A stretch of DNA of 64,000 nucleotides from Tubulanus polymorphus (GCF_964204645.1 NC_134030.1:20606210-20670209), one strand, 5' to 3'; positions 3,466-64,000 are shown, counted from the first letter of the stretch. Numbers and translations: made by a program. The notes: generated from the letters alone by a model not told the origin.

Positions 3466-12616
<9,151 letters not shown>

Positions 12617-39683: not shown

Positions 39684-41449
39684 CGTGACGAACGCGTACA
39701 ACCTACCTATTTTAATATATTTTAGTTATCGATTGAGACCCGGTTTCAGAAATTCACTCGACTGCCCGAATATCAGATCGATCACAAATGGGACGTTGGC
39801 AATTCTTTACAGGACTGGACGAAGAACGAAATAAGCAACAAAGAAGGCGTTCGAGAATGTGAAGCTGTTTGTATAAATGAAACGAAATGTCCGCTTATAT
39901 CAACCGACAATGAACGCCTTTGTCATCTGTATGACGTCACCATCAACGAATCATGTAGCCTGCCTAGCGATCAACACGTGTACTACAAGTTAACAACGTG
40001 ACTCGATTGTTATACATTTTTGAGTTAGAATTTCTTTCGAATGTTATGTTCTGATCGTCTTTAAAAAACATAAATGGGCATCTTAAACCTATTGATTCAA
40101 TTTCTTATCCATCAGAACTAGTTCGGTAGCCGTCAATTGCTAGTGACCAGTGCTTTAACCACTTTAACATTTTAGAACCAATGCCTTAGACTGGTTTTAA
40201 ATGGGAGCATTGGCTGCGTGCAACTGGACCTTGTTAATGACAGTAAAGTGGATATATCTGCTAGATTGAACCAATCCCCTCATCAAGAAACCAATGTACC
40301 TTTAAAAAAATCCGTGTTTTCAGATCATAGAGTCAGAGAAATTGCCTAATCCATTTCAACTGATCCAACCGTGGCTTCGTTATTGTGTGATGTCTCTCGT
40401 TATCATCATACACGGATATTGTGTATCTTCTCGTCTAATGATTTGTGAATGTATCCTGATCTGTTGAAATATCCATTTCAGGTAGATGATAATCAGCGAA
40501 AATCAAAGAACACGACAAACGGTAGGATTGAATTATTTCAAATAATCTTATATAGTAGTTTCACAAAAAATGAAAGTAATCTGAAATCAGTTATTCTGAT
40601 CTATTCTGATTTAGTAGTTATTCTTTACTTAGTTTGATATTTACAGTAGTCGTAGTTAGGTTTGTTCTGTTCTGTGCCATCGCCATCGCCATCGTCGCAA
40701 GATCACATAATCCATTTGAAAATCCTACAAATACAATTTCTTCATGTTTATTTGTGTCTAAAGCCACACGACACATCAACATTTCAGGTGCCGAACCGTT
40801 GTCGCACCGATTCCAATATTTTTTCGACTTCGAAAATGTGGACGTCAAACGCGGAATCGTGTTCGGCGAGGGAGCCAATATGACGGCGGATGACGGCCGG
40901 AAACGGGTCGAGCTAATGGTAGGCAAAGACGGTGTCGATAAAAGTCAAGCAATCATATCGAGAAGCAGTGCCATTGCATTACGTTTCGCCAACAAGAGGG
41001 ATGAAATTGCTCCAAAAAATTATTCGATTTCGTTTATATTTCGTGGTAAAGGTTTCGTATCTATATTTGCGAACTTTGCTAAACCGAATCCAGGGGAAGG
41101 AACAAGAAACACAAGAAGATACTTCACGGTATATTTCAAATTGGATTCGAGATATGCCACTAACGGCAGGTGCTTAGGTCCAACGTTGAAAACAGAATCA
41201 CACTTCAAGATTGATAAAACGCTCCTGAATAAAAAGAAACTTATCTCCGTTCGATGTTCGAACGGGATTATGTACGTCGATGATGTAGAAGGGAAATTAG
41301 TCAGAGAAGTTAAACTGCCCGAAACCGATACTTCAAGGATAGCGAGCACTGCTGGTCCCGAAGTCGCTAACATAATGAAAGAAACGCTATACGCCGTTAA
41401 TATTTATCAAGCGCTGATTGACAACCTAAAGATTGACGTTTGGAATTAG
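39684..41449 (+). pseudogene. Paralog of the PAN-LamG gene: decayed exon 1 (about 39684-39989), intact exons 40482-40521 and 40788-41449
   Basis: The start codon position reads GTG, the signal region is out of frame with the PAN frame, and the donor after YYK reads TT instead of GT. The LamG exon is open and similar to 38910-39571. Confidence 0.6.
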
Positions 41450-43136: not shown

Positions 43137-43178
43137 CACCTGGTGAAATGATTCATATCCCCTCGAAGCGTATAAAAA
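43137..43178 (+). promoter_or_regulatory. GY-gene promoter module (E-box, TGATTCAT, TATA), copy A
   Basis: CACCTG-gtgaaa-TGATTCAT...TATAAAAA. Confidence 0.7.
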
Positions 43179-43312
43179 CCATCGCAAAAAGTTCATAACG
43201 TCTTACCTTGGAAAAGAACTATTCAAACCGCACCAGGTAAATCACCACCGTATTATCGTGCGTTCTTGCGATAGCGTAAAACTTATTTGCCTGTTAAATT
43301 TTTCGATTCAGG

Positions 43313-43895
43313 ATGAAGTTAGTTTTCCTCGTCACGATGGCCCTTGTGGCCGTGGCTGCTGCGGGTTAGTATAATATTTGACAGTATGAAGAAAATCGAG
43401 TCCATAACCCTGCATTCTAATTTGACCATTTTTACATTTCTCCGTTAAGGCGATGGCTATGGTTACGGCTATGGTGATGTGACTGTGGTCGAAGAGTATG
43501 GCTATGGTGGTGACTACGAAACTGGTTACGGCTATGGTGGTGAATACGACGATGGCTATGGCTATGGTGGTGAATACGACGATGGCTACGGCTATGGTGG
43601 TGAATACGACGATGGCTACGGCTATGGTGGTGAATACGACGATGGCTATGGCTATGGTGGTGAATACGACGATGGCTATGGCTATGGTGGTGAATACGAC
43701 GATGACTATGGCTATGATGGTGAATACGACGATGGCTATGGCTATGGTGGTGAATACGACGATGGCTATGGCTATGGTGGTGAATACGACGATGGCTATG
43801 GCTATGGTGGTGAATACGACGATGGCTATGGCTATGGTGGTGAATACGACGATGGCTATGGCTATGGTGGTGAATACGATGATGATTACTACTAA
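43313..43895 (+). CDS. Secreted acidic Gly/Tyr-rich protein A, 165 aa, (GYGYGGEYDD)x12; exons 43313-43364, 43450-43895
   Basis: Signal [17 protein letters not shown], phase-1 intron, 30-nt coding repeats, upstream TATA, non-coding first exon, 3'UTR intron and AATAAA at about 44530. Confidence 0.9.
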
Positions 43896-44589
43896 TAAGC
43901 CAAAGGTTAGTACTCAAGTCGAATAATGCGTTTGATAATGATTTATCGAGTTTGTACATGTACGTAATATCGACATTCATGGTGAAATAGTTCTTGAAAT
44001 ACATACCGAATATTACATAAATATGATCTAAGCAATGGATTTCTACAAGACACCGTATGAAAAACAAGCTTGACGCCCACTCTCTAATAATTTGGATGAC
44101 ATAAAAGGATTATATTCGACCTAAATTGAAATTAAGTAGAACCGCGTTCACTTGGGACTGTCAGCAGGTGTCAGACAATTGTTAAAAAAACGGAGTACGT
44201 AAAGAGGGGTAACAAGTCTATTGAGTAAACAAGTGAATGATTACATAATCAATGGGTGGTGTTAGGTTTGCGTGCTCTTCTCATTTCACGATAATGCCGA
44301 TATTGCAATAATGCAAGGGCAACATATTACTTAACACGTGAAAAGAAAATGATAGATATATTTGTGTTGATGAAAATGTAAATGTTTCGTATGTTGAATT
44401 TGTTGATGCTAAAGTATTCTGTGATTTCAGATGAATTCGTTCTATTTCAGGGCCGCTCACAATTGATGCTGATGACATCAAACCATTCATATCGATGCTT
44501 CTTGTTGCCCCGAATTCATCGCTTACGTCAATAAAAGCCATTATCAAATGAAAGAACTTCTTTTAAGATCTTAACTGAAAAGGAATAAA

Positions 44590-45075
44590 AACTTCAAACA
44601 AATCTACTTCAAACACCAGATATTAGAAATCCTGCATTAATACTGTTAACAATTATCATTTTCACTTCAAAATGAATGACATAACAGACGATTGTTCAGT
44701 ACACCTTTACTCTACATCGCTTCAGACTCTTTTAGAATTTTATACGAGACATTATTTTCATTAAAAATGAAGGACAAACAGCAGAAATGAGACATTTTAT
44801 CAGCACACTTTCAAAAACTGATCGCCTAAAGTTGACATGTGTCCAATACTTCATCTGAGACATTTTTATTTGAAAAAAAAACTACATGCACCAGATATTA
44901 GACATTTTATCAGCAAACATTCAACAACTGATCGTCCTCTCTTCACATATGTTCAGTACTTCACCAGATATTAGGCATTTTATAAAGACACTTTCAAAAA
45001 AACTGATCGCCCACACTTCACGTGTGTTCAGACTTCGGTCGAAAGATTTTGAGTTGAATATGAACGACAGACATT
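44590..45075 (+). repeat. Degenerate 109-bp satellite copies
   Basis: gacattttatcagcacactttcaaaaactgatcg motifs. Confidence 0.75.
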
Positions 45076-46095
45076 AGAATTTCGCACTTTCAAAAAGGAT
45101 TCTTATCGATACAGGCGTGAGATTTGGATTGTCAACACGGATCACATCATCATTATCCCTACGTTGATATGATTCCAGAGTACTAACAGTATCTATTCGA
45201 GGAATGCGTTTGGCTTGACGGGATATTCCTCCCATTTGAATAGTGAGCAACAATTGTTTGATAGTGGGATATATTCCATGGAACTTACAGTAGGACATCG
45301 CCGTTGATAGATCCCCAACATCAATGACGACATTAAATGGGTTCCCTTTTCCGAGATCAAAACAGGCCGGCCGGATCGAAAGAAGTTCCCAAGACATTTA
45401 AGTTTAGGCCGATCACCATTACATATGTCACCACCCAGCTGTTCAATTTTACAAATGTACAATACCGCAATATCCCTACCCAATATTTCAGTTTGGGCAT
45501 TACGAACAGCTGTTGCGAACTTTCAAAACGACTATAACAGTCTTTGAAACGCTATTAACCTTCACAATATTGGAGGTATGCGGAATGCACTTGCAAAGGC
45601 GATATCAACGTGATACCAGATTTATAGAAGTGATTATGGGTATGGGAACAGGTGGTTGTGGGTGACAGTCGAAGTGGACAAAGGTTGTTGGCACCGGTAT
45701 GCCAGGTAGTCGTGAAATATAGTACGTGAAACCAGGTCGTGGCGGACGCAAGGGCATTGAGGACGACAGTGAGTTAGGTAAAAGGTCATGGAGGGTTTGT
45801 TGCCTAATACTGGGACTCGAGGGTTCGAAACTGGGATGCCAGGTCATGGAGTTCCCCAGTTTTGCATTAGGCTGCTGGGATGACTTGGGTGATTAGTGAG
45901 CTTGAATTTGGGATATCCAATCTATAAGTGCTTGGGCTCGGTACAACTTGTCGCAATGCCAACTGGGTGGTTTAGCGGGTTAAATGTGCAGCTGGCTTCG
46001 AAACACCAGTGAATTCCTGTGTTGAGAATAATGATATATAAATATTATAAGTTTATTTCTTTACTCAAGAGATACAATACAGACATCTCTATTAG

Positions 46096-46442
46096 ATAAC
46101 ATCCTCCCCCGGCAGGGATTCGAGCCTGATGGCATCGAGATTGCCACGGTACGAAACCCTGCCATAATCGACCGTGTGCGCAGATACATGCGCAGTTTAG
46201 ATGATGTGATTTTTAGCCAATCAGAAATCCCGTTTTATTTTAGCCCGGGTTTTCCCATTTATAGTTCTTCCTTGAAATGTCCTTCAGCGACTATACAACG
46301 AGCAATCTGATTGGTGCCGCCAGTTTTCGTTCAGAAAGCTGAGTGTACCTGCGCACCCGGTCTACTGATGCAGGGGTTCGTGCCGTGGCTGAGTGTAGCG
46401 ATGCCATCAGGTTCGAGTCCCTGCAGAGGGAGGATGTTAGAT
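46096..46442. mobile_element. MITE with long imperfect inverted arms containing B-box-like GGTTCGA motifs
   Basis: aacatcctcc..gcagggattcgagcctgatggcatcg..ccacggtacgaaaccctgc versus gcaggggttcgtgccgtgg..cgatgccatcaggttcgagtccctgc..ggaggatgtt; inner pair ccaatcaga/tctgattgg. Confidence 0.7.
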
Positions 46443-46638
46443 AAATGAAAAAAAAAATTACAGAAAGTGCGGGATAATTGAAAGGAATGGTGTGTTAGTA
46501 CTCGATTATGTAAATGTGTTGATCGTCGAAGTCAGTGACGTCACTACGCAAATGTCTGACTACGAACTAACCTATGTTGCAGAGCATAAATCATTCCGGA
46601 CATAGGAAGCAAAATAGAGTAAGGGAACAGATTATCAG

Positions 46639-46680
46639 CACCTGTTGAAATGATTCATGCGATGGCTTAGGTATATAAAA
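46639..46680 (+). promoter_or_regulatory. GY-gene promoter module, copy B
   Basis: CACCTG-ttgaaa-TGATTCAT...TATATAAAA. Confidence 0.7.
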
Positions 46681-46869
46681 CCACATTGAAGAAAAATCGA
46701 CATCTCATCTCGGAAAAGAACAGCCTCCAACTTTTTAAGGTATTTTGTAAAGTGTTCGCTTGTTTCATCTGCCAATTCACATTTGTTCTAGCGTAAACAC
46801 GTTCTTTGATGAGAAACACGTTTTTTTTGTAAATGAGGGCATTTTCAATGGTCATGTTTCTAATGCAGG

Positions 46870-47199
46870 ATGAAGTTAGTTTTCCTTGTCATGATGGCAA
46901 TTCTGGCCATAACCCTAGCTGGTACGTAATGCCAAGCATTCGCCTAATTTGATAACTCGAATCCTGTATATAATCAACCGAAATATCTTGTTCTCCTAGG
47001 CCGCAGAGAGTATACTTACGACTACAATCGTGGTTATGATCCATACTACGGCCGCGGGGGAGCTTACGAAGGTCGTGGAAAGTATGGCGTGCGTCGTAAT
47101 CGTGGCTACGGAGGTGGTAGATACAAACCAAGACGTGGATCATACGACCGGGAGATATACGATGATGGATATGGCAGTGGGTCATATAGAGATTTTTGA
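46870..47199 (+). CDS. Secreted basic Arg/Gly/Tyr-rich protein B, 83 aa; exons 46870-46921, 47000-47199 (absent from the ORF track)
   Basis: Signal MKLVFLVMMAILAITLA, mature GRREYTYDYNRGYDPYYGRGGAYEGRGKYGVRRNRGYGGGRYKPRRGSYDREIYDDGYGSGSYRDF*. Same gene architecture as its paralogs. Confidence 0.88.
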
Positions 47200-50100
47200 G
47201 GCGTGTCAATGTAAGTATATCAACGTTGAATACATTTTTTTCACAATACCGGCTATTCTGTCAGTTGTATTGTCATCGAGATCATCCTCATTTAACATCT
47301 ATTGTTTGATATTAATATAAGGTCCAAACGATGTAAGTTTCACTTTTCTGCCTCAGAGATTTGGTATAGTTTTATTTTGTCAGATCATCTCTCGCCTCAA
47401 GTTGAGTCCTTCGTTGCTGCAGTAGTTGATGCCATAGTGCACGCTAGCGACATCTGATGAGACTCCATTGCCAGATTCGATGTCCTACTGCACGCTAGCG
47501 ACAACTGTACGATCCTCATTTCGACAAGTAGCCTCAACTTTTTGCTGCAGTAGTTGATGTCCTGCTGCACCCCATCGGACCTGGTGGAGACTGGCCACGT
47601 AGTGTTAGCATCGTGTGCTTCAGTAACGCCGAACTAACCTTATTTGAATCGATCGGATGATTGAGACATTCTGTTTCTATATTTCAGGATTGTTCCAAAG
47701 AAGGGAGGGAAGCTCAACAGAACCGGTTGAAAGCTCATTCGACATTATCGATAGATCGTCTGAATAAAAACCAAATATCTAAACGAAACGATTAATGTAG
47801 TGTTGAATTGTATTCATTTTATAAATGGTGCAGGGCACTTTGCTGAAACAAGGAAAAGACATATTCATTGTCAAGTTTCTTTTTCACAACTATGAATTCA
47901 TTGTCTGTATTTAACCAATTCGTGCAACCTTCCAATGACTTTCCTCACAATGAATGCGATAATTCACAGTAGGAGACACAGAGAATGAGTATTCTATCGA
48001 AATTATTGTCATCATTGATATTTCAAAGTCCAATAAAACGTACAAACAACGAGCAATAATCATAGAGAAATAACGCCGTTTTATCTAATCCCGGTGATTA
48101 TATGTTACGTGCCACATTCCGCAATCAATGATTGATATTAGAATGATAAAGTGGTTCGAATGATCAAAAGGTTCAAATTATAAGACGGCCAATTATTGAT
48201 GATATGACCCGTGTTATTAGAATAATAGACACCATACGGGAATATGGGTAAGAAGTAACGGGTAAGATGAAAGTTGGGCTCGTGGAAATCAAGAAAATAA
48301 AGGGATATAACTGATTCATATTTGATATGCAGCACACAATAATGAGTGCTACATAAGTGCTTAAGACACTTCTACCAGTTGTAATCACCGAAAATTCACA
48401 TGATTTGATGAAATAAATGAAAGGCATCGCAAAGAATTCGCGAACAAACAGTCGAAACAACTCTCGGTAATCAACCAGGGCTCAAAAATTGATGACAGCG
48501 CATCCGAAGATAATAGTTTTCACGGAACGAATCATTTGATCATTGCACTAATTTCACACCGGATCTTCAACTGCCACAGCAACATTTCCCGATTGCATAT
48601 CAACGTCCGAACTCCGACTACTCGTTTTTGCCATCGTAGCATTCCAATTCCACGGTATGGGAATATCAACATTTTAAGCCACCTGACTAGGGCCTGCCAC
48701 AGAAACATTCTGACTCAAATAGGACATCTATTAATATTTATATCTATATAAGACTGATGGCGCACTAGTACCACCTAGAAGTCGTTGAACACCGATCACA
48801 ACACGTTTTCTGACCAAGGACAAAGTTTGCGGTGATAGATTAGGCTCGGGTAAACCGTTCTGTCACTGGTGCTAAATTTGTCACGTGCCCAAAACGCATT
48901 GCGACAAGTCTGTGCCAAAGTTTCAGCACGGACTGGTAAAATTGTGCAGTGTGAATGATTAAGTGAAGTGAACAAAATTGCTTGCCATATTATCGTTAAG
49001 CGTTCTACCCAGGCGTGGTATCAATGTATCACTCGGTTGGTGGTGCCGGCCAGTTTGATCGTCTCTGCGTTATCCCGGCTCTTAATGGGGTCGGCGCAAA
49101 CTAGATGGCCCTACAATACACTCAGTTATACGTTGTAAACGTTACAGTCAACCCCGCACTCGTCATCGAATCAGTCGTATCATCACATCTCTCGTATAAT
49201 AATTTTAGTCCCAAGTCGTATTTACACGTAAGTCGTACAGATTTTAGAAGCCAAATCTTCTGATTTCATTCAAAATACCTCGCGTAAGTCGTAGCCCGAT
49301 ATGCCGGCAGCAGATAAAAATACACAACACTATTGTCTGTGTAAGTGTTTAGACAATTACGATGTAAATTTCTTGTGACGTTGTCTGCGTGGTGCAAGTG
49401 TCCGCTTTAATTGATTGATGGTGGGTAGATTTTAGCGAGATAGGATCTGCACTGTCAGCTCAGCTGGAATCTAAGCATCGTATATATCGTATTTTCATCA
49501 CGGGTTATTCGAGGAATTCGTATAAAACCACGACTTATAGATAGCTCGTGAAAATACGACATACTCGTGAAACCTACATCACGTAAGTCTAAGAAACCAT
49601 CAGTCCCGAGGGCTGATGCGGTAGTTCATTTTCAATAAACTTTGAACTGGATTTTTAGGCTCCCAAATGGAAATGTTGTCAAATAAGTCATCAATTAATT
49701 AGATTGACGTTCGCAATTGTGTATGGCATTGTTTTATTAGAAATTGATTTCACTAATGAGAAAAGTTGACTCGAATTTAATTGAAATGTAGAATAAATTG
49801 AAGCGCGGCAACCGAGTAACCACTAGCGAACCTGGCGGATCCTCGCCTGCCATAAGTGGAATCCTCGATTGCCTCTGTAGCATCGATTGCCACGGCATCC
49901 GAAGAGAAGAATCCTAAAACTATGAATATGAAAAAAAAACTATTTTCATTCTCAGTTACAGAATGAATTTCATCGATTTGATTTATCTTGCATAATAAAT
50001 TGGTTCAGGGATTTTGATACATGATTGTTATCAGATAATATGTAGTCAGTATAACAATAATATAAGGGCGACGAATTTATATATCCACGTTTTTGAATAA

Positions 50101-50776
50101 GAGAAACGTGACCAATCAGGCACACCTGTATCGGAAAACACGATATGATTTATAAAGTCGGCTACCTGCCCAGTGGCTGCAGTAAAACTCGAAGATAGCA
50201 TGTGTTTTAGTCATATTTATTGTGGAGCGCCACATATTGTGAATACAGGTTTGAACCTTACGGTAAACCTTAGAATGTGATTTATGTACTCATTTATTTT
50301 GCGAATATCTAGTAATAATAATAAGTAATAAAAATTAAATTAGTAATCAAGTAACATAGGAGTGAAAGGTCATTTCAGGATTACATCGTCATTAACCAAA
50401 CGAACAAGCTTTTTTCACCGATTTAATTGTTTTATTCGGTTCTACTGAGTATCATGATCATTGCAAGCAGATGAATTTAAGGAACTATCAAAAGTAAAAA
50501 ATCAAATTAGTTATCGATAATTGGACATTTTGATATTGCATATGAAATGTCATGCAGTAAAACTTACCCTATTAACATATAAAAACAATATGAAACTGGT
50601 TTGGGTACATAAAGTAAACACAAATTTAAAGGTTTCAGCCTACGATCAGGACGAGGTGATCATTCAGTTCAAAAATATTCAGTTAAATTGCTGAAAAGAT
50701 ACCGATGAGAATAAATCTTCAGCTTCAATATATCAATATTGTTAACGGCAGTCATAGCACAATCGGAAATAAATTG

Positions 50777-50818
50777 CACCTGTTGTTGTGATTCATGTCC
50801 GCGTAAAGAGTATATAAA
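50777..50818 (+). promoter_or_regulatory. GY-gene promoter module, copy C
   Basis: CACCTG-ttgttg-TGATTCAT...TATATAAA. Confidence 0.7.
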
Positions 50819-50962
50819 CCGGCTTCGAGGTGCAACAAGACATCTTATCTCGGAATAGAGCTCAAACCACGTAAGAACGAAGACTAGTTTTAGTAGCCAC
50901 TAAATATCATATTTCGAGACACACGTTCGAAAATTGTTTAGAAAAATCTTTTCTCTTACAGG

Positions 50963-51902
50963 ATGAAGTTAGTTTTCCTTGTCATGATGGCCCTCGTGGC
51001 CATGGCTTCTGCCGGTGAGTATGAATTTGTAAATTACCAGTTATCGGAATACTTCATAACTCGACATTTTTATGCTGGGTTTTTCTTCAGGCTACGGATA
51101 TGGAGGTTATGAAGAGAGTTATGGGGGAGTAGGTTATGGTTATGGTCATGGCGATGGATACGGCTACGGGGAAGCTGGCTATGGTTACGGAGGCCAAGAG
51201 GAATCTGGATACGGAGGCTACGGGGAAGCTGGCTATGGTTACGGAGGCCACGAGGAATCTGGATACGGAGGCTACGGGGAAGCTGGCTATGGTTACGGAG
51301 GCCACGAGGAATCTGGGTACGGAGGTTACGGAGGCTACGGGGAAGCTGGCTATGGTTACGGAGGCAACGAGGAATCTGGATACGGAGGCTACGGGGAAGC
51401 TGGCTATGGTTACGGAGGCAGCGAGGAATCTGGATACGGAGGCTACGGGGAAGCTGGCTATGGTTACGGAGGCCACGAGGAATCTGGATACGGCTACGGA
51501 GGTCACAGAGGCTATGGAGGCCACGAGGAATATGGTCATGGAGGTTACGGAGGCCACGAGGAATCTGGATACGGAGGTCACAGTGGCTACGGAGGCCATG
51601 AGGAATCTTATGGAGTATCTGAATACGGACATAACGGAGGTTACGGGGAATCTGATGGCTACGGAGGTCATGAGGAATCTGGATACGGAGAGGACGACAT
51701 CTACGGAGAGGAAAACCACTACGGAGAGGAAAACAGCTACGGAGAGGAAAACGGCTACGGCCGTAGTGATGATGCAGCATACGACGATGGTAGCTCGTAT
51801 GATGACTCCAGCTCAGCTGATGATTCCAGCTCGTACGATGACTCCAGCTCAGCTGATGACTCCAGCTTATACGATGATTCCGATGATTCTAGTGAATACT
51901 AA
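50963..51902 (+). CDS. Secreted acidic Gly/Tyr-rich protein C, 287 aa, with ([18 protein letters not shown])n repeats and an Asp/Ser tail; exons 50963-51014, 51091-51902
   Basis: Signal MKLVFLVMMALVAMASA, phase-1 intron, ORF 51072-51902. Confidence 0.9.
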
Positions 51903-54900
51903 ACCGGAGGATCGATTATTGCTAACGTAGACGCATGTAAGTGTTTATGTGAAATGCACAGTGATATCTTGAAATTGTTCAATAATCGAATGCTGCGTAT
52001 CTATAAAGAAACGCCTGATTAGTCCATTGGTCCTATTGTATTTATGCCAATCAACATGGGAATACTAGACAAAAATCGTGGGCTTGTTCCAACGGTAGTT
52101 TTACGTGAATTAATAAATCTAATTTGTTTTCTCATTCAGGTTCTCTATATTTACCAGTCAATACGTGGAGATAGACATTCATGAAGAATTGAAATTGTTC
52201 TCCGAAATAAAAGGCATTAATCGTAACATTAGTTTCCTGGTTTCGATGTTGTTTTGTTCTGAGGTGCAGTGGTTTTGGGTAATAGTTAGTGATAGCGCCG
52301 GATTGCTCTGGCGATGTGAGCAGTGCCATGCAGATGGTCACTTAACCAATGAGGTTCCAGTGCTACCAGCGAGGTTCCCGTGCCACCAGCTATCCGGTTA
52401 CGCGAAGGGATGGTGGATCTAGTGTGACGATGCATCTAACAACAGTGGCACAACCTCAATTTTCTGTTAATTTTCATTGGAAATCGTCTGTCGATAGATT
52501 TGACGAATCGTGCGAGACCAGAGGAATTCAGCATTGCTTTCCAATCGCGGTTTGGTGGGTCCTTACCATTTACGAGTGGAATACTCTTTTGTTCCAGTTG
52601 AAGATGAATAATATCCAGCTTTCGAGTCGCAGCTACAATTCTATCAGTTCCGAACATGCATAGTATGAAGATAATAACTATTTTCCAAACGATAGCGGAT
52701 AGGCGACAGCAGTTCTCGGGCTTAGAACTCCGAAATTACCAAGCGTTAGTTCCCATTGCATTTTGGATACGTTACATCTAGGGTCATTAGCTAAATTTCT
52801 TCGAGACAACTTTTTTCCTTTGATCTCATTCCCGAGTTATGAGGTCATATCGTGGCCATGTTACCTGTTACGAGTTTATAGTGCCTATTTCTGGCGCTAG
52901 CTGGTGCACTGCACGCACATCTAGATACATATACTAACATTGCAATCGAGTTTTATTAAGATCGACTTAAATAATCTAGAAGGTAAACACCAATACAGAC
53001 AGGCACACAGACAGACAGTACAAAAAATGGTCTCGTGGAAGCCCGGGAACCAGAGAACTTCAACACTAAAAAAAACATCTCACGACGGAACTGTAGAAAC
53101 TGGCAAAGATAAGGTTGAACTAGTAAGTTGCTGTAAAACCAAAGTTAAGAATCAGATATGGTGCGATTGCGCTCATAAATGCCACAAACGGATATCGAGA
53201 GAACGATTAAAAAACGTTCGATAAAAGTTAAATTTTTTGTTCCCTCACCTTACGATAATCATAGATGTGATGATAATGGTTCAGAAATCACCAAGCTGGC
53301 TGGATTCTATTCTCCATTTTTCTTACCGAGTTTACATGGTCTTTTTGACTGAATCAGTTCTTTAGACAGTCTAACACAAACTAAAGTCCGATCATAACGT
53401 GTTAGAGCTCATAGAAGGACACGACCGACGCACAGTAAGATATTACAACCGATCGACGAAATAAGTTTCGTGGTAGACGGTCACATTAATGTCCCGACCG
53501 GCCAAGAGAAAAAAAACATCCTATTTCAACCCCATGAATTCACAATTTACTTTAAATGCGTGATTTAGAAACAACGAATAGAAACTGGGCCTACTCAAAT
53601 TTAAGAACATACTTAAAAGGTTCGGTTACAATCATCAGTTCTCACCTGATGACTGCTCGTTTGCTATTCCTGAGTATCATCTGCCCATGTATCCGCATCT
53701 ACGAGTATATACTCGTTAAATAGGAACATCATATTGGTAAAAGAATTTTCGTAAGAAGTATCCGATGTTTGCTATTTTACGATAGCACCTCCCCAGTTCC
53801 CTAGAATAGGGGCCAGGGCCACCATGTCACCTGGCGCAACTGATGCAGTGCTCGATAACCAGACATTTCTAATATTCAAAGCCCCCATCGTGGACGTATA
53901 CACAACCCGACGATTCCAATACTCTGAATGACAGGAAATATGTGAAAGTATGTAGTACCGAATTTTGAAAAAAAGTAAATCGGGACGATGATCCGTTCAT
54001 TACAACCTTAAACTAACGAACAAACTACAAACCGAAATCCACAGCTCTTCATAAGGGATATACCTGAAACAGAAATAGACAACTTCAAACAGGGTTCGAA
54101 TGGATGGGGTGATCGCGTTACTGGAAGTGATTGAGGAGGGATGGCACTGTTAACAACGAGAAACAAATTCTAATGGAAAAGTCAAGCGCGAAACATTTTT
54201 TGTCCCATTAGCCTGCAGGCCATTTCTTTTTAATGAATCATTTCATCATATAAAAGTGCTCTGAGTAGCTTAGCTGGATTAAGTGTTTACAGTCCGTTAT
54301 ATGAAAAACAGAAACAGGTATACCTTGAAAGAGACCTACCGTATCAACTCACCTCGACTCGTGTCGAATAAATGAAGGCCATTCATCGGACACAGTTTTA
54401 CATGTTGTCGTCGTTGAATTAATCCCACCTGTTACATACAATTAATGATTATGCTTCATCGTGGACATTGCTAGCGACATTTGTTACGACAATTATCATC
54501 AATCACTCACGGGCGCGTGTCCTTCGTATGACAGAAGTTGGTTTTGATGTTCCGTGGTGCCAGCTTGTACTATTTTGTCTTAATCCACGTAAATTCATTT
54601 TAACTAATTTTGAGTCGACTCTCCCGTTCCGGTCAAACATTTCCTATGCTCCATTTATAATGCTATGGGGATGGATAGAAAAATAGTTCAATACATGAAA
54701 CTGCCTTGACAAAAGCACCCAGTAGCAATAAGAAGAAAATATAAGCAAAGAGACTAAAAGAAAAATTGCAAAAGGCAAAGCTTGTTATGGGTCGGGCAAA
54801 GCTTTATGTCCGTTGTCGCGAGCACCCAATACGGAGAGGGATGGATCTACTCTTGAGGTCCTCCGCGATTCTCTCTAAGTAGTAACGTAATACAGGAAGT

Positions 54901-55619
54901 GGAAAGAATTGGGATTTTATTATGTAAATGAAGACATGTTGACGGGAATGTAGAAACTGACGCAGTCTCTTGAACTTTGACATTATTATCGGGTATCTAG
55001 AAACGATGAGATTAAATACAAATTATTTAGTAGGAACCAGAACTTCTAAAACGCTATCATCTCAACAGTGACATGATATCATGAAAATTGTGGCATCACA
55101 ATGTCCCGTTCGCGATACGATAGGGATTCTGACATATAAAGATCTAGATATCGAAATTGATGGAATTCTGCAAAACAAATCACTACTAATCCTGATTGAT
55201 CGGCAACGTGACTTTCTTGATGTTGATATATTATTGATGCATTCACCTACTACGATTATAACTAAAGGATTTATGTTTTAAATGCTGTACATATTGTAAG
55301 CAGAAACTACGTACTACTATGACTATGCCTTTTATTCTTTATAAAAAAAATAATCATTCTTGAAAGAAACGTTTACACCGATACAATGTGTTATAACTAA
55401 CTTATTTTTATAAATCTAGTTACATCAGGCCAACGTTCAATACATTTAGACTCAAATATCATTCAAAACAATCTAATAATTTACATCTGCTATCAGAGCA
55501 ATCCAGAAATGATGTCCACGCGTGAAAAATGAGGCCATAAAAATTTCAATTCAAGCCTCCTCTAGAAAAAAAGATCAATTACTGACAACATCCTGAGCCA
55601 TTAAAAAAGAAATTCGAGG

Positions 55620-55659
55620 CACATGTGGAAGTGATTCATGGGCTGGTAAAGTATATAAA
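55620..55659 (+). promoter_or_regulatory. GY-gene promoter module, copy D
   Basis: CACATG-tggaag-TGATTCAT...TATATAAA. Confidence 0.7.
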
Positions 55660-55802
55660 TCGATTCCACAACTCAATTCGACATCTTATCTTGGAAAAGA
55701 ACTCATAACTGCAGGTAAGGACTTTCTGTTGATAACTAAAACATTTTTAATATTAGCGATATATCTCTCTCTCTTTAACGTGGTTTGTTTATTTTCAACA
55801 GA

Positions 55803-56839
55803 ATGAAGTTAGTTTTCCTTGTCACGATGGCCCTTGTGGCCTTGGCTTCAGCCGGTCCAGGTAATTAAGTCGATTTCGAATTAAAGGTTGTTCGAGTACC
55901 TCATAGCTTGACATTTTTATAATCGCTAATTCTTCAGGCTACGATTACGGATACGGAGGTTCTGGATACGGAGGCTCCGGATACGGAGGCTCTGGATACG
56001 GAGGCTCAGGATACGGAGGCTCTGGTTATGAAGAGTCATACGGAGGTGGATACGGAGATCATGAAGAGTCATACGGAGGTGGATACGGAGGTGGATACGG
56101 AGGTGGATACGGAGATCATGAAGAGTCATACGGCGATAACGAAGAGTCATACGGAGGCTCTGGATACGAGGCTGGATACGGAGGCTCTGGTTATGAAGAG
56201 TCATACGGAGGTCACGAAGAGTCATACGGAGGTTCTGGTTATGGGGCTGGATACGGAGGTCATGGTTATGAGGCCGGATACGGAGGTCATGGTTATGAGG
56301 CCGGATACGGAGGTCATGGTTATGAGGCCGGATACGGAGGTCATGGTTATGAGGCCGGTTATGGAGGTCATGGTTATGAGGCTGGATACGGAGGTCATGG
56401 TTATGAGGCCGGATACGGGGGAAATGGTTATGAAGAGTCATACGGAGGTGGATACGGAGGTCATGAAGAATCCTACGGAGGTGGATATGGAGAGGAGTCA
56501 TACGGAGGCGGATATGGAGGTGATGAAGAATCCTACGGAGGTGGATACGGAGAGGAGTCATACAGAGGCGGATATGGAGGTCATGAAGAATCCTACGGAG
56601 GCGGATATGGAGGTCATGAAGAATCCTACGGAGCAGGATACGGAGGCTCTGAAGAGTCATACGGAGGTCGAGGCTATGACGAATCGTACGGAGGCTCAAG
56701 ATACGAAGACTATGGTCGATCAGGTAGTGATTACGAATCTGAACCAGCTGGACCAGCTCCAACAACTTACGTGCCTGAACCAACTCCAACATCAAGTTAC
56801 GTGCCTGAACCAACTCCAACATCAAGTTACGTGCCTTAA
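55803..56839 (+). CDS. Secreted acidic Gly/Tyr-rich protein D, about 319 aa, with [11 protein letters not shown] and GYGGHGYEA repeats and a Pro/Thr tail; exons 55803-55860, 55938-56839
   Basis: Signal [17 protein letters not shown](GP). The frame is open to TAA at 56837-56839; the true frame is absent from the ORF track. Confidence 0.88.
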
Positions 56840-59800
56840 CCCTATGGGGTGACAGAGCAGGGATATAAATGTATGTTAAAAAATTATCTAAACTTAATCC
56901 ATATGAAACTTGTTTTTAACATTCTAAGACCTGCTTAACATGATTTGTCCTTTACATTTCAGGAACTCAAAGATGCAAGTGCTAGTACAAGTACTGAACA
57001 CTTAAGAGGTAGTCGGGCGAAAATACCGATGAATTTCATTTATTGTAAACATCTGCTGAAATAAAATGTCTAATAGACCGAAACATGATATTGTCGAGAT
57101 TTGTTGTTACTTTTGGGCCGTTGTATTGATTGGCTGTTAGGTTTACTCATGCTAATATGAGAGACGTCTTTGCATACTTTGTTTGCGATGATAGTCAATA
57201 AATTGCCGATGATGATCCGTAGTTCAAAGCCGGGAGTGGAAGTGAGTCAAAAAGCTCAGAACTCTGAAATTACCAAACGTTAGTCCCCTTTGCATTTTGA
57301 TATGTTATATCTAGGGTCATCAGCTTAATCTATTTGAGACAACTTTTTGCAGTTTGACCTCATTCCTGAGTTATAACGAGGTCACATCAGTTACGTTGGT
57401 CGATCACGTGTTTTAAGTACCTAGTTTTGTCGCTAGCTGGTGCACTGGGCCCATCATTTGCACTGCACAACTTGACTAATGTGCAAGCATATGTAACCAA
57501 GTTTCATGAAGATCGAATCGCTATAATGTAGAAGCTTAGTAGATGATATACATACACAAATAAACATGGCCACACAATGGTCTCACTGAAGACCGAGAAC
57601 CAGAGATTTCAACATTAAAAACATTTCATAATGGAACTGAAGAAGAACCTTGCTTAGGATGAGGTGGCACCAGAAAGTTGCTGTAAAACCAACTTAAAGA
57701 ATCAAATATGGTTCGAATGCCCATTGACGGCATAAACGGACATCGAGAGAACGATTAAGCGAAGTTATATTTTTATTCCCTCAACGTGCAATATGGGTAA
57801 ATATGATGAGAATGATTCAGAACACAGCCGGCTGGATTTTATTATCCAGTTTTTTCTCACCGACTTGACATTGCCTTTTGACTGAATCGGTTTCTAAGAC
57901 AGTTCAACACAAACTTAAATCCAATCATAATGTGATAGAGCTAATAGCAGGACAGGAATTGAAGACCTACGACCGATGCACAGTAAGATATTGCAACCGA
58001 TCACCGAAATAAGTTTACTGATAGACTGTCATATTAATGACAAATTAATGACCTCAAGAGAAAAAAAAACATCCTATTTTCAACCAAATGAACTCACAAT
58101 TCACTTGAATAACTTAATTTGCAAACAGCGATAAGGAACTGGCCTACCCGGATTATAGAACATGCTTAAAAAAGGTTCAGTTATCATTTCTCTTCCCTGA
58201 TGACTACGCCTTTTACTATTCCAGAGTATAATCGGCCAATGCATCCGTAACTACGAGTATGCTGGTTAAATAAATACCATCATATTTGCCAAAGAATATC
58301 GATAAGAAGTATCCGATGTTTGCTATTTCACATTAGCACCACCGAAGTTTCCTAACTTAAGGGGCCATGATCATCATGTGTCCTGGTGCAACAAATGCAC
58401 TGCGTAATAGGTGCAACCCTATAATCAGATATTTTTATATTCAACGACTCCATCGCTAACGTATACACAACCTGATGAAGCCGATACCCTGAATGATGGG
58501 GAAAAGGTGTAGTACCACATTGAAAAATGGAAAACGTAACGATAATCTGGCCAAAACGACCTTAAACGATTGAACAAACTAGAATGCACAAACCGAAGCC
58601 ACAGCCGTCTAAGGGATATACCTGAAACAGAATATAGAAATTGATTCAAATAGGGTTCGAGGTATGTGGCCATCTCGTTACTGGGAGGGATGGTACTATT
58701 GAGAATGAGAAAAATTTCAGATTGAAAAGTCAACTTCTCTAAGTAACCCTTGCTTCCATCGTCAGTTTGTTACGACAATGATTCTCCCAACAGCGTGAAA
58801 CAACCTTCGTACCAGCTCGATCCTATTTCTATCAAATTTTTCCTTTGCTTGTATCAGAAAGCATCTATATTAAACATTTACATTGAAACATTGAACCCGT
58901 TTATAATGCCCTGCATTGCGCTTAGCGGGTTGAGGGTGTTTGCAAAAAAAAATTAAAAAAGATGGGCCATTATATGAAAATGAGATATACCTAAAAGAGA
59001 CCTACGTGAACCCTATCAACTCACCTCGATTCTTGTCGAATGAATGAAGGCTATTCATCGGACACAGTTTTACATGTTTTTGTCGTTGAATTAACCACAC
59101 CTGCATTATTAAATTGATGACTTTGCTTCATCGTTGACATATTCAGAGACATGTGTAGCGACGATTATCATCTATAATTACGGGCGCGTGTCCTTCGTAT
59201 GACAAAAGTTGGTTGCAAAGTTCCGTCCGTGCCAGATTGCACCATTCGTCACAAATCCACGTGAAACCAATTGAACCATATTTGAGTTGACTGTTGTGTT
59301 TCGTTCCGTAATACTGTGGAGTAGATAACAAAATATTGTATGAAACAAATTAGTGAAACCCCCTAGTTATTTTCGTCTAGTCAAAATATAGGATCTGCGC
59401 CATCTTTTTGGCAATCGGGACTGCATTGACCAACTTATCAACGTCATAATGACGAATCTACTTCAAGGTCAAGTTTATTTTGCGAATAGCAATGAAATAT
59501 AAGCAATGAAAAAAAAGAAAAAGACATACCACGAAACTAACGAAAGCTTTAAACGTGGGCCAAGCGCAGTTCGAAGACCGATGTCGCGAGCCTCCAATTC
59601 GAGGGAAAAGTTCAAAGGAAAATAATCGGGGTATTCTTGATATCCTCTTCTGTTTATAGTAACTTTTTAAGGTGGTAAGTTGTATGGTCGGTACATTCGG
59701 ATTTCGATATCATTAAATAATCTAATAATCCACATCTGCTCACCGACCAATCCGACAATGACGTCCATGCGTGAAAAATGAGGCCATTGAAATTCAATTC

Positions 59801-59868
59801 AAGCCATTTCCAGAAAAAAATTATCAATTACTGACAACTTCCTGTGCAGTTAAAAAAGTAATTCCACG

Positions 59869-59909
59869 CATCTGTTGTAGTGATTCATGTGCCGGTAAAA
59901 GTATATAAA
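59869..59909 (+). promoter_or_regulatory. GY-gene promoter module, copy E
   Basis: CATCTG-ttgtag-TGATTCAT...TATATAAA. Confidence 0.7.
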
Positions 59910-60046
59910 CCGATTTCAAAAATAACTCAACATCTTATCTTGGGAAAGAACTCATAACTGCAGGTATCATTATGTACATAACTAAAACATTTTCAATTTT
60001 ATCGATATATTGCGCTGTTTAACGTGGTTTGTTTATTTTCAACAGA

Positions 60047-61242
60047 ATGAAGTTAGTTTTCCTTGTCACGATGGCCCTTGTGGCCTTGGCTTCAGCCGGT
60101 CCAGGTAATTAAGTCGATTTCGAATTGAATGTTGTTGAAGTACCTCATAGCTTGACATTTTTATAATCGGTTATTCTTCAGGCTACGATTACGGATACGG
60201 AGGTTCTAGATACGGAGGTTCTGGATACGGAGGTTCTGGATACGGAGGCTCTGGATACGGAGGTTCTGGATACGGAGGCTCTGGATACGGAGGCTCTGGT
60301 TACGGGGGCTCTGGTTATGAAGAGTCATACGGAGGTGGATACGGAGGTGGATACGGACAGGAGTCATACGGAGGTGGATACGGCGATCATGAAGAGTCAT
60401 ACGGAGGTTATGAAGAGTCATACGGCGATAACGAAGAGACATACGGAGGCTCTGGATACGAGGCTGGATACGGAGGCTCTGGTTATGAAGAGTCATACGG
60501 CAATAACGAAGAGTCATACGGAGGTTACGAAGAGTCATATGGAGGCTCTGGTTATGAAGAGTCATACGGAGGCTCTGGATACGAGGCTGGATATGGAGGC
60601 TCTCATTATGGGACTGGATACGGAGGCAATGGATATGATGAGTCCATTTACGTTGGCAATGTGTATGAGGCCGGATATGGAGGCTATGGACATGAAGAAT
60701 CATACGGAGCTGGATACGGAGGTCATGGTTATGAGGCCGGATACGGAGGTCATGGTTATGAGGCTGGGTATGGAGGTCATGGTTATGAGGCTGGATATGG
60801 AGGAAATGGTTATGAAGAGTCATACGGAGGCGGGTACGGAGAGGAGTCATACGGAGGTGGATATGGAGAGGAGTCATACGGAGGTGGATATGGAGAGGAG
60901 TCATACGGAGGCTCTGGTTATGAAGAGTCATACAGTGGTGGATACGGAGATCACGAAGAGTCGTACGGAGGCTATGAAGAGTCATACGGAGGTGGATATG
61001 GAGGTGGATATGGAGGTCATGAAGAGTCATACGGAGGTCGAGGCTATGACGAATCATACGGAGGCTCAAGATACGAAGACTATGGTCGATCAGGTAGTGA
61101 TTACGAATCTGAACCAGCTGGACCAGCTCCGACAACGTACGTGCCTGAACCAACTCCAACAACGTACGTACCTGAACCAACTCCAACATCAAGTTACGTG
61201 CCTGACCCAACTCCAACATCAAGTTATGTGCCCGAACGTTAA
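60047..61242 (+). CDS. Secreted acidic Gly/Tyr-rich protein E, about 372 aa, close paralog of D; exons 60047-60104, 60182-61242
   Basis: Signal exon identical to that of D. ORF 60661-61242 gives the C-terminal half, ending (TTYVPEPTP)n-R. Confidence 0.9.
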
Positions 61243-64000
61243 GGGGTTATAGTGCAGAGATATAAATGTAAGTAGTGAACTACATTATCTAAACTTAATC
61301 AATATGAAAAGCATTCTCACACGAGTCCTTCGAGCAGAAATTGACCTATTGATCTGAGCGTCAATGATACCAGGTTAAGATAAAATGCTAAATACTGCTA
61401 AACGTGATTTTTTCCATTACATTTCAGGAACTCAAAGATTCAAGTGCTAGTACAAGTACTGAACACCCAAGAGGTAGTCGGGCCAAAATACCGATGAATT
61501 TCATTTATTGTAAACTTCTGCAAAAATAAAATGTCTAATAGACGGAAACATGATAAATTGTCGTTACCGATTGATACTGAAAAGAAATTTTGCGAACATC
61601 GGATATTCGTCACTCAAACCCGATCTTGCAAACCCCAGAGCGCAATACCTCGAAATAAGTCGTTTCAGCGCTCGTCCAAGTTAGCATTTTAGTATTCTAC
61701 ACTGCTTGACATGCCGGAGAAGGATCAATGTAACTTATGCATTCGCTGAAATAGAATGTTGAAATTCTAGAATTTGGGGGAAAACTGATGTGAGTCGACG
61801 CCAAACTAACAGCCACAAGGGGTCTGGAGAGACTAAAGTATCCATCAAAACAGTCGAGATTTGTTGTTACTTTTGCGCCGTTGTATTGATTTAAATGGCT
61901 GTTAGGTTGATTACTAATGCTAATATGAGAGACGTCTTTGCATACTTTGTTTGCGATGATAGTCAGTAAATTGCCGATGATGATCCGTAGTTCAAACCCG
62001 GGAGTGGAAGTGAGTCAAAAAGCTCAAAACTCTGAAATTACCAAAAGTTAGTCTCCATTGCATTTTAGTTATGTTATATCTAGAGTTATTGGCTTATTTC
62101 ATTCGAGACAAGTTTTTGCAGTTTGACCTCATTCCTGAGTTATTACGAGGTCACATCAGTTACGTTGCTCGATAACGAGTCTTAACTTCCTAGTTTTGTC
62201 GCTAGATGGTGCACTGGGACCATCATTTGCACTGCACAACTTGACTAATGGACAAGTATATGTAACCAAGTTTAATGAAGATCGAATCGCTATAATTTAG
62301 AAGCTTAGTAGATGATATACATACACAAATAAACATGGCCACACAATGGTCTCACTGAAGACCGAGAACCAGAGATTTCAACATTAAAAACATTTCATAA
62401 TGGAACTGAAGAAGAACCTTGCATAGGATGAGGTGGCACCAGAAAGTTGCTGTAAAACCAACTTAAAGAATCAAATATGGTTCGAATACCCATTGACGGC
62501 ATAAACGGACATCGTGAGAACGATAAAAAACGATCGATAAGCGAAGTTACATTTTTTATTCCCTCAACCTGCAATATTCATAAATTCTGATCAGAATGAT
62601 GTAGAACACAGCTGGCTGGATTTTATTATCCAGTTTTTTTCTCACCGACTTGATATTGCCTTTTGACTGAATCGGTTTTTAAGACAGTTCAACTCAAATC
62701 CAATCATAATGTGATAGAGCTAATAGCAGGACAATAATTGAAGACCTACGACCGATGCACAGTAAGATATTACAACCGATCACCGAAATAAGTTTTTACT
62801 GATTGACTGTCATATTAATGGAAAACGTAACGGTGTTCTGGGCAAAACAACCTTAAACGAATGAACAAACTAGAATGCACAAAGTCACAGCCGTCTAAGG
62901 GATATACCTGAAACGGAAAATAGAAAGATTCAAATAGGGTTCGAAGGGATCGGATCATGCGTAACTGGAAATGATTGGGGAAGGGTGGCACAATTGAGAA
63001 TGAGAAAGATTTTAGATTAAAAAGTCAATTTCTCTAAGTAAAACTCGCTTCCATAGTCAGTTTGTTACGACAATGATTCTTTCAACAGCGTGAAACAACC
63101 ATCGTACTAGCTCATATTACTATCAAATTTTTCCTTCGATTGTATCAGAAAGCATCTATACTGTTTCCCTTTCAATTAAGCGCATTTACTCATCGACCCG
63201 ATCAGCTTCGCTGGATTTAGTGCTATGTGTGGTCAATTATATGAAAATGAGATATACGTAAAAGAACCGTATCAACTCACCTCAATTCGTGTCGAAAAAA
63301 TGAAGGCTATTCATCGGACACAGTTTTACATGTTTTTGTCACTGAATTAACCACACCTGTATCATGCAATTGATGATTATGCTTCATCGAGGACATATCC
63401 AGAGACATGTGTCACGACGATTATCATCAATGATTACGGGCGCGTGTCCTTCGTATGACAACGGTTGGTTTCAAAGTTCCGTAGTGCCAGATAGCAGCAT
63501 TTTCCCAAATCCACGTGAAGCCACTTTAACCATATTTGAGTTGAGTTGACCGTAAGAATGCCATTGCCTGCGGTTCATCCGTAAAACTGTGGAGTAGATA
63601 ACGAAATAGTTAATATTAGATAAATCAGTGAAACCCCTAACTATTTTCGTCGAGTCAAAATAGGATATGCGCTTTCTTCTTGGAAATTGGGAATGCATTG
63701 ACAAAGTTACCAACGTCATAATGACGAATCAACTTCGAGCTCAAGTTTATTATCAATAACATATAAGCAAAGAAACAAAAAAGATATAGCTTGAAACTTA
63801 CAACGAGCCTTAAGTGTTGGCCAAGCGCAGTTCGAAGATCGTTATTGCGAGCATCAAATTCGAGGGAAATGTTCAAAAGAAAATTACACTAGGATTACAG
63901 GATTTAGGATTACAATTGAAATCCTTTTGTATCTATTTTAACTTTTTTAGGAGATAAGTTGTATGTTCGGTAAATTCGGGATTAGATTTCATTCCAATGG

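Follow-up and report, generated by a model that had tools for sequence, protein, structure and literature searches.

What is encoded by a tandem run of secreted, glycine- and tyrosine-rich proteins in a palaeonemertean ribbon worm, and what might such proteins be for? The question is raised by the right-hand part of a 64,000-nt stretch of the Tubulanus polymorphus genome (hereinafter the window; C6:20,606,210-20,670,209, where C6 is contig NC_134030.1 of the 268-Mb, 77-contig assembly GCF_964204645.1), in which five genes (hereinafter designated A to E) each join a short exon encoding the signal sequence MKLVFLV to a long repetitive exon. We find that A to E are the leftmost genes of a single-locus family that comprises 20 tandem paralogues and is provisionally restricted to this lineage. 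The secure core of this result is the expansion at one locus, the secreted, disordered and polyanionic Gly/Tyr polymers that it encodes, and a 5′ end that is frozen at the nucleotide level. As to function, the reading we favour, with slightly less than even confidence, is that the proteins are bulk constituents of a gel or other extracellular material produced by one gland-cell type.

A single-locus family of 20 tandem paralogues

A degenerate MKLVFLV pattern matches the window five times, against 0.01 matches expected by chance, always on the + strand, with the signal-exon ATGs at 43313 (A), 46870 (B), 50963 (C), 55803 (D) and 60047 (E). An initial annotation of the window had taken these five genes as the extent of the system, a view that the genome count overturns. 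When up to one mismatch in 29 nt is allowed, the signal exon has 20 copies genome-wide (268 Mb), all of them on C6 between 20.649 and 20.796 Mb, in a span of ~147 kb on one contig that carries 12 copies on the + strand and then 8 on the – strand. Only the left end of this cluster falls inside the window, whose edge cuts the family and thereby limits the count to five genes; 15 more members lie beyond it, at C6:20,670,535-20,796,039.

We modelled all 20 copies, using 140 kb beyond the right end of the window. In 19 of them the signal exon splices in phase 1 into a Gly/Tyr-rich open reading frame (ORF). The imperfect copies are S, which lacks a clear ORF, M, which is truncated, and G, whose C-terminus is shifted. 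F and G closely resemble D and E. H, I, J, K and L come next, I being a protein of 601 amino acids (aa) with ~50 PSESY units and J and K carrying PPPGDTSDY tails, and are followed by the eight opposite-strand copies, among which R and T have Cys in their ends.

On the 3′ side of C, D and E, the intergenic DNA (52720-54620 compared with 57254-59292 and 62022-63544) shows 72-78% identity over up to 1.5 kb, and the unit that was duplicated to give C to E therefore took in the spacer.

The features of the five genes in the window are as follows (window coordinates, all on the + strand).

43137-43177, +: gene A promoter module; box CACCTG..TGATTCAT at 43137-43156, TATA at 43171-43177
43198-43236, +: gene A predicted non-coding exon 1, start approximate; core at 43201-43216, donor GT at 43237
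43312-43364, +: gene A signal exon; ATG at 43313, phase-1 donor at 43365
43450-43905, +: gene A mature exon, 148 aa; stop at 43893-43895, donor GT at 43906
44451-44555, +: gene A putative terminal 3′UTR (3′ untranslated region) exon, end approximate; AATAAA at 44530
46639-46678, +: gene B promoter module; box at 46639-46658, TATA at 46672-46678
46699-46739, +: gene B predicted non-coding exon 1, start approximate; core at 46703-46718
46869-46921, +: gene B signal exon; ATG at 46870
47000-47210, +: gene B mature exon, 66 aa; stop at 47197-47199, donor at 47211
47688-47790, +: gene B putative terminal 3′UTR exon, end approximate; AATAAA at 47763
50777-50817, +: gene C promoter module; box at 50777-50796, TATA at 50811-50817
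50838-50870, +: gene C predicted non-coding exon 1, start approximate; core at 50843-50858
50962-51014, +: gene C signal exon; ATG at 50963
51091-51936, +: gene C mature exon, 270 aa; stop at 51900-51902, donor at 51937
52140-52230, +: gene C putative terminal 3′UTR exon, end approximate; AATAAA at 52206
55620-55658, +: gene D promoter module; box at 55620-55639, TATA at 55652-55658
55679-55714, +: gene D predicted non-coding exon 1, start approximate; core at 55684-55699
55802-55860, +: gene D signal exon; ATG at 55803, donor at +58
55938-56870, +: gene D mature exon, 300 aa; stop at 56837-56839, donor at 56871
56963-57085, +: gene D putative terminal 3′UTR exon, end approximate; AATAAA at 57060
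59869-59908, +: gene E promoter module; box at 59869-59888, TATA at 59902-59908
59929-59963, +: gene E predicted non-coding exon 1, start approximate; core at 59933-59948
60046-60104, +: gene E signal exon; ATG at 60047
60182-61267, +: gene E mature exon, 353 aa; stop at 61240-61242, donor at 61268
61428-61550, +: gene E putative terminal 3′UTR exon, end approximate; AATAAA at 61525

The 5′ end of the genes is frozen at the nucleotide level

When the regions around the ATGs (from –400 to +100 nt) are aligned, islands of identity stand out inside DNA that is otherwise unalignable. A promoter box, CAYMTG..G...TGATTCAT, which combines an E-box-like part with TGATTCAT, precedes TATAWAA by 12-14 nt. 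An exon-1 core, TCTYAYYTYGGRAWAG, follows ~25 nt past the TATA element, with a GT donor within the next 15-25 nt, and intron 1 (75-130 nt) ends in the acceptor CAG, which is separated from the ATG by one base. The phase-1 donor of the signal exon is at +52 in A, B and C and at +58 in D and E, and a pyrimidine-rich acceptor joins this exon in frame to the single long mature exon. The initial annotation had credited all five genes with a common MKLVFLV signal exon, a phase-1 intron and the same promoter module, and the alignment bears out each of these points: the signal exon is near-identical, the joins are in frame, and box and TATAWAA recur throughout. The non-coding first exon that it had also proposed has a conserved core and the same donor architecture in all five genes, features from which the exon itself is predicted.

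How unusual this conservation is becomes apparent when identity is measured region by region in ten subfamily representatives, with shuffled controls. Between subfamilies, intron 1, intron 2 and the distal upstream DNA give 0.41-0.53 identity versus 0.39-0.52 for the shuffled sequences (introns alone, 0.41-0.44 versus 0.39-0.40). The corresponding values are 0.71 for the box and TATA element, 0.85 for the exon-1 core, and 0.95 and 0.80 for nt 1-30 and nt 31-52 of the signal exon, respectively. Codons 2-7 of the signal exon (e.g. window 43313-43342) use the same synonymous codon in 19-20 of the 20 copies, next to introns that are saturated with change, suggesting that the 5′ end of the message is under constraint at the RNA or DNA level, or is subject to very local (short-tract) gene conversion. 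Codon 8 varies in the protein and encodes Thr, Met or Val. The family has the layout of secretory superfamilies in which a conserved signal precedes a hypervariable mature region, synonymous sites included, which is a likeness of architecture class and not of homology. Conopeptide-type superfamilies likewise keep the signal, here even at synonymous sites, while the mature region diverges freely; conopeptides, however, are short disulfide-rich toxins, whereas the proteins described here are long repeat polymers free of Cys (A to Q). The locus thus provides a clean case of a secretory family that has kept the nucleotide sequence of its promoter, 5′ exon and signal exon frozen while the rest turns over.

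Genome-wide (268 Mb), the promoter box and the exon-1 core are confined to this cluster, and the module was therefore inherited within one expanding locus and is no signature of a regulon. A regulon marking other gland genes, including the toxin-like gene that lies within the cluster, is ruled out by the same result. The shared module had been interpreted as a sign that the genes are co-regulated; its sharing is explained by duplication.

Gene structure at the 3′ end and coding status

In genes A to F, a GT[AT][AT]GT donor is located 10-39 nt past the stop codon, a good acceptor follows 90-540 nt further on, and a terminal exon of ~100 nt contains AATAAA. BLAST comparison of the 3′ flanks detects similarity among C, D, E and F only, and the flanks of A and B share none detectable. 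The 3′UTR intron that had been assigned to each gene is in part upheld: donor, acceptor and AATAAA recur in all five, and the intron is predicted from this architecture, repeated across genes whose flanks are unlike. With less than 50 nt between stop and junction in A to F, the mRNA would, by the usual rule, be spared nonsense-mediated decay.

The low complexity of the mature exons invites the explanation that the locus is non-functional repeat DNA or a set of decaying copies, with open frames as a by-product of satellite-like sequence. Several frames are open across the repeats, S, M and G are defective in the ways described above, and the sequencing runs that cover the locus derive from genomic DNA and give no RNA support. 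On the other hand, promoter, splice sites, phase and the stop of the GY frame are retained in 19 of the 20 copies despite saturated introns, all 35 indels in exon 3 of D, E and F are multiples of three, compared with about a quarter of those in the 5′ and 3′ flanks, and the YGRS hinge of the mature proteins (see below) is conserved. Wholesale decay or satellite origin is, in our judgement, highly improbable. Gene B adds a point from standing variation: DNA contigs list no single-nucleotide polymorphism (SNP) across 46707-47433, where the only variants are indels at 46829 (intron 1) and 47215 (3′ intron), and several flanks of the gene carry ~1 SNP per 50 bp, which lends weak support to constraint.

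The products are mostly acidic Gly/Tyr polymers predicted to be disordered

The mature part of A consists of 12 near-perfect copies of a 30-nt unit encoding YGYGGEYDDG and is 36% Gly, 30% Tyr and 30% Asp+Glu, with a net charge of –45. B (66 aa) is rich in Arg, Gly and Tyr, with a net charge of +6 and an isoelectric point (pI) of 9.65. C is built of GY/His/Glu repeats, a YGRSD hinge and an Asp/Ser-rich tail (net –56), D of GYGG/EESY repeats, a YGRSG hinge and a Pro/Thr tail (37% Gly, 20% Tyr, net –45), and E of GYGG/EESY repeats with a hinge and a Pro/Thr tail (net –53). These compositions match the earlier description of A to E as divergent low-complexity repeats. Across the family, Gly and Tyr together make up 30-66% of the mature sequence and Tyr alone 15-31%, in agreement with the earlier claim that proteins of such composition occur in cross-linked extracellular materials, and A to Q contain no Cys. 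Strong polyanions account for 18 members (net –18 to –105, pI ~4); only B and the doubtful S are cationic.

The likeness among the mature regions goes beyond composition. A YGRS[D/E/G] motif is found in nine genes (C to K), in each of them precisely where the GY module gives way to the tail, and it follows that the mature regions of C to K are homologous and two-part. The tails themselves vary, being rich in Asp/Ser, Pro/Thr, PSESY or PPPGDTSDY. The tail of C, with its Asp/Ser-rich 12-residue units, recalls the Asp-Ser-Ser repeats of dentin phosphophoryn but is only ~30 residues long in all, is interrupted by Tyr and Ala, and has no homology to that protein.

AlphaFold2 predicts no secondary structure for the mature exon of D (mean predicted local distance difference test score 41.9), with values of 75-81 confined to the final 30 residues, which lie in the Pro/Thr tail, and the products are predicted to be intrinsically disordered. 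For this fold and for the database searches below, single exons served as queries; signal and mature exons were joined only to establish frame and composition. The mature exons of A to Q contain no N-x-S/T sequons, although Asn, Ser and Thr occur. B has three dibasic sites and the acidic members have none. Most tyrosines are in an acidic context, a large share of them with no basic residue nearby, and acidic flanks are the classical context for tyrosine O-sulfation. Lys and Arg are absent from A and scarce in the other acidic members, so standard tryptic proteomics of mucus would miss these proteins.

Such proteins could serve as granule-packaging or carrier polyanions in the manner of chromogranin or serglycin, condensing a cationic cargo (basic peptide toxins, amines or guanidinium toxins) with which they would be co-released. 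Their extreme negative charge in the absence of Cys and folded domains, and tyrosines that are mostly acid-flanked and might thus be sulfated, are in keeping with such a role, as are the large toxin-like ORF with ricin-B, PAN and ADP-ribosyltransferase domains within the cluster span and the abundant gland cells of the ribbon-worm integument and proboscis, in which toxins are stored (PMC6410017, PMC12846013). However, the toxin-like gene has neither the family signal exon nor the promoter module, and 20 genes with very long repeat arrays fit bulk structural products better. We consider a packaging role unlikely.

The charge of B underlies a further alternative, put forward in the initial annotation: a complex-coacervate glue, in which B and the polyanions would be co-secreted and phase-separate into an adhesive, as in the cement of the sandcastle worm (Phragmatopoma). 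Part of this holds, in that B is cationic, has the full family architecture and keeps its exons free of listed SNPs between more variable flanks. The cement proteins Pc1-Pc5 are, likewise, secreted, low-complexity and of Gly/Tyr-rich type, with oppositely charged members and tyrosines open to oxidative curing; they are made in dedicated gland cells, as the present family is proposed to be. The balance of charge is lopsided, however: whereas a coacervate cement has comparable amounts of polycation and polyanion, here a single Arg-rich 66-aa protein of +6, besides the doubtful S, faces some 18 polyanions, and the charge of the other members sums to about –800 over the cluster. The chemistry also differs, since Pc cement pairs phosphoserine-rich polyanions with Lys-rich Gly/Tyr polycations, whereas here nearly all members are carboxylate (Asp and Glu) polyanions, with a short Asp/Ser tail in C alone. 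No homology to the Pc proteins emerged from phmmer with D or from word searches with D and B, and the common promoter was inherited by duplication and is absent elsewhere in the genome. Charge imbalance, carboxylate chemistry and an apparent co-regulation of trivial origin make the analogy weak, and a glue of this kind is quite unlikely.

The family is an orphan in the libraries searched

A search of the five mature exons against Pfam returned no family even at E-values up to 1. Word-indexed searches gave no match among 8000 candidates for D and no candidate at all for B, and the ESM Atlas yielded no usable match. An exhaustive phmmer search with D against 1.84 billion representatives produced 445 matches at E ≤ 0.001, none below 1e-30. 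Among the best 150 of these, 136 carry the RTX-type motif GGxGxD, Gly+Tyr is never above 0.32, and the family signal is at the start of none. The RTX matches arise because D contains a 9-residue repeat, YGGHGYEAG, which resembles the calcium-binding bacterial RTX nonapeptide GGxGxDxUx in being acidic, GG-containing and nine residues long. At positions 6 and 8, RTX repeats have Asp and a hydrophobic residue, respectively, whereas D has Glu and Gly; with ~34% identity and no strands in the AlphaFold2 model, kinship to RTX proteins or a β-roll was rejected as an artefact of periodicity. The searches thus detected no homologues, in line with the initial annotation, which claimed a likeness of composition only, and a literature search found no description of a ribbon-worm Gly/Tyr-rich protein. 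As far as these libraries reach, the family appears to be an orphan, and since they are poor in ribbon-worm sequences, its restriction to this lineage is provisional.

Trematode eggshell precursors, insect chorion proteins and Gly-Tyr cuticle proteins resemble the family in their tandem clusters, strong promoters and Gly/Tyr repeats, and harden by tyrosine chemistry, which the composition found here might likewise allow. Because chorion and eggshell genes are classically arranged in this way, as tandem clusters that encode Gly/Tyr-rich secreted proteins behind strong promoters, the family might be reproductive, its products surrounding oocytes or forming spawn jelly hardened by tyrosine oxidation. 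Those proteins, however, fall into defined families and range from basic to neutral, whereas the present ones are acidic, consist of a hinge plus a tail, and have no detected homology to them; the acidity is unlike that of known eggshell precursors. To our knowledge, ribbon worms also have no vitellaria or shell glands comparable to those of flatworms. We give an egg-envelope function a low probability.

Alternatively, the genes might encode precursors of signalling or antimicrobial peptides, for instance ligands of the amplified receptors that adjoin part of the cluster or counterparts of nematode Gly/Tyr-rich peptides. M to Q sit in a 10-kb cassette, present five times, beside CUB-LDLa-LRR-7TM receptor genes, B has its three dibasic sites, and toxin and antimicrobial-peptide families typically combine a conserved signal with a mature region that is hypervariable. 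The nematode NLP/CNC antimicrobial peptides are likewise Gly/Tyr-rich secreted products of clustered genes. They are, however, shorter than 100 aa and cationic or neutral, with YGGWG/YGGYG motifs, whereas A, C, D and E are polyanions of 148-353 aa; B is short and cationic but Arg-rich, without that motif arrangement or relatives. More generally, polyanions of 150-600 aa differ from Gly/Tyr antimicrobial peptides, which are short and cationic or neutral; the acidic members lack dibasic processing sites, and the genes in the window are not paired with receptors. A role as peptide precursors is very unlikely.

A candidate extracellular material

We continue to favour the reading of the proteins as bulk constituents of a gel or other extracellular material. 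We infer from the genes and their predicted products that the family is transcribed, that one cell type expresses it, that the proteins are secreted into a structure and modified there or on the way, and that they have a material role. In this scheme, the strong TATA promoter would drive expression at a high level in one specialised gland-cell type, and the proteins would be exported as the bulk of a secreted sheath or tube, or of a sticky or gel-like secretion. Cohesion might come from the abundant tyrosines, through oxidative cross-linking to dityrosine or dihydroxyphenylalanine (DOPA) products or through sulfation that would give a hydrated polyanion, and also from carboxylates bridged by cations or by cationic partners. 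The genome contains at least one tyrosinase locus and several haem peroxidase loci, able in principle to cure Tyr-rich proteins. Curing enzymes linked to the cluster were considered and rejected: the tyrosinase and haem peroxidase genes sit on other contigs and are not visibly expanded.

Several points weigh against this reading. A single tyrosinase locus was detected, which is not near the cluster and shows no expansion. Known Gly/Tyr-rich structural proteins are mostly basic or neutral, and an acidity as extreme as that found here is unusual for such a role. The tube record available for the genus comes from another of its species. The in-frame indels of D, E and F are partly automatic, as the repeat periods are multiples of three, and ORF length is weak proof of coding because other frames are also open across the repeats. 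Finally, in the three sequencing runs (from one study, none of them recorded as RNA) that cover the locus, the contigs over 43886-49880 cross introns and intergenic DNA and show no splice joints; the runs are therefore genomic DNA and silent on expression. Published transcriptomes of Tubulanus polymorphus stem from the Pacific form, which may be a separate species, and as such would escape a near-identity index, so that silence of the index is not silence of the genes.

Taken further, the locus could be the basis of an uncharacterised ribbon-worm biomaterial, in which Cys-free, heavily Tyr-modified (sulfated, oxidatively cross-linked or both) polyanions would combine with cationic partners such as B into a cellophane-like sheath or an adhesive, independent of the materials of annelids, molluscs and arthropods; this more specific proposal is speculative and, on present evidence, rather unlikely. 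In the literature searched, we found no molecular characterisation of any structural secretion of ribbon worms, and the locus supplies concrete, testable candidates for one. Extreme polyanions are unusual among Gly/Tyr-rich secreted proteins. If they form a true material, it would represent a new chemical solution, based on carboxylates or sulfotyrosine instead of Lys/DOPA or phosphoserine.

Neighbouring genes and repeats

The toxin-like gene lies between K and L (C6:20,700,304-20,706,234, + strand) and is a single open frame of 1977 aa, with a PAN domain, five ricin-B lectin domains and a C-terminal ADP-ribosyltransferase exoenzyme domain. Further along, at C6:20.727-20.785 Mb, the cassette of ~10 kb is repeated five times, each copy pairing a GRL101-like CUB-LDLa-LRR-7TM receptor gene (+ strand) with a short family member (– strand) that has YDYxPYEESYDDGYGES repeats.

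Within the window, further loci precede the cluster on the + strand. Exons at 4247-8531 belong to a gene with DOMON and copper type II ascorbate-dependent monooxygenase domains (dopamine-beta-hydroxylase-like), and a single-exon gene at 15586-17001 encodes a 471-aa Major Facilitator Superfamily transporter (MFS_1, E-value 7e-35). Two paralogous ORFs, at 38957-39571 and 40634-41449, lie directly upstream of the cluster; they have no Pfam match and share a FDFENVDV..GEGANMT start and an ALIDN..I.VWN end. Between the genes of the cluster, at 44686-45085, 46086-46485 and 49686-49880, contig depth in the genomic DNA runs reaches thousands to tens of thousands with many loose ends, marking interspersed high-copy repeats.

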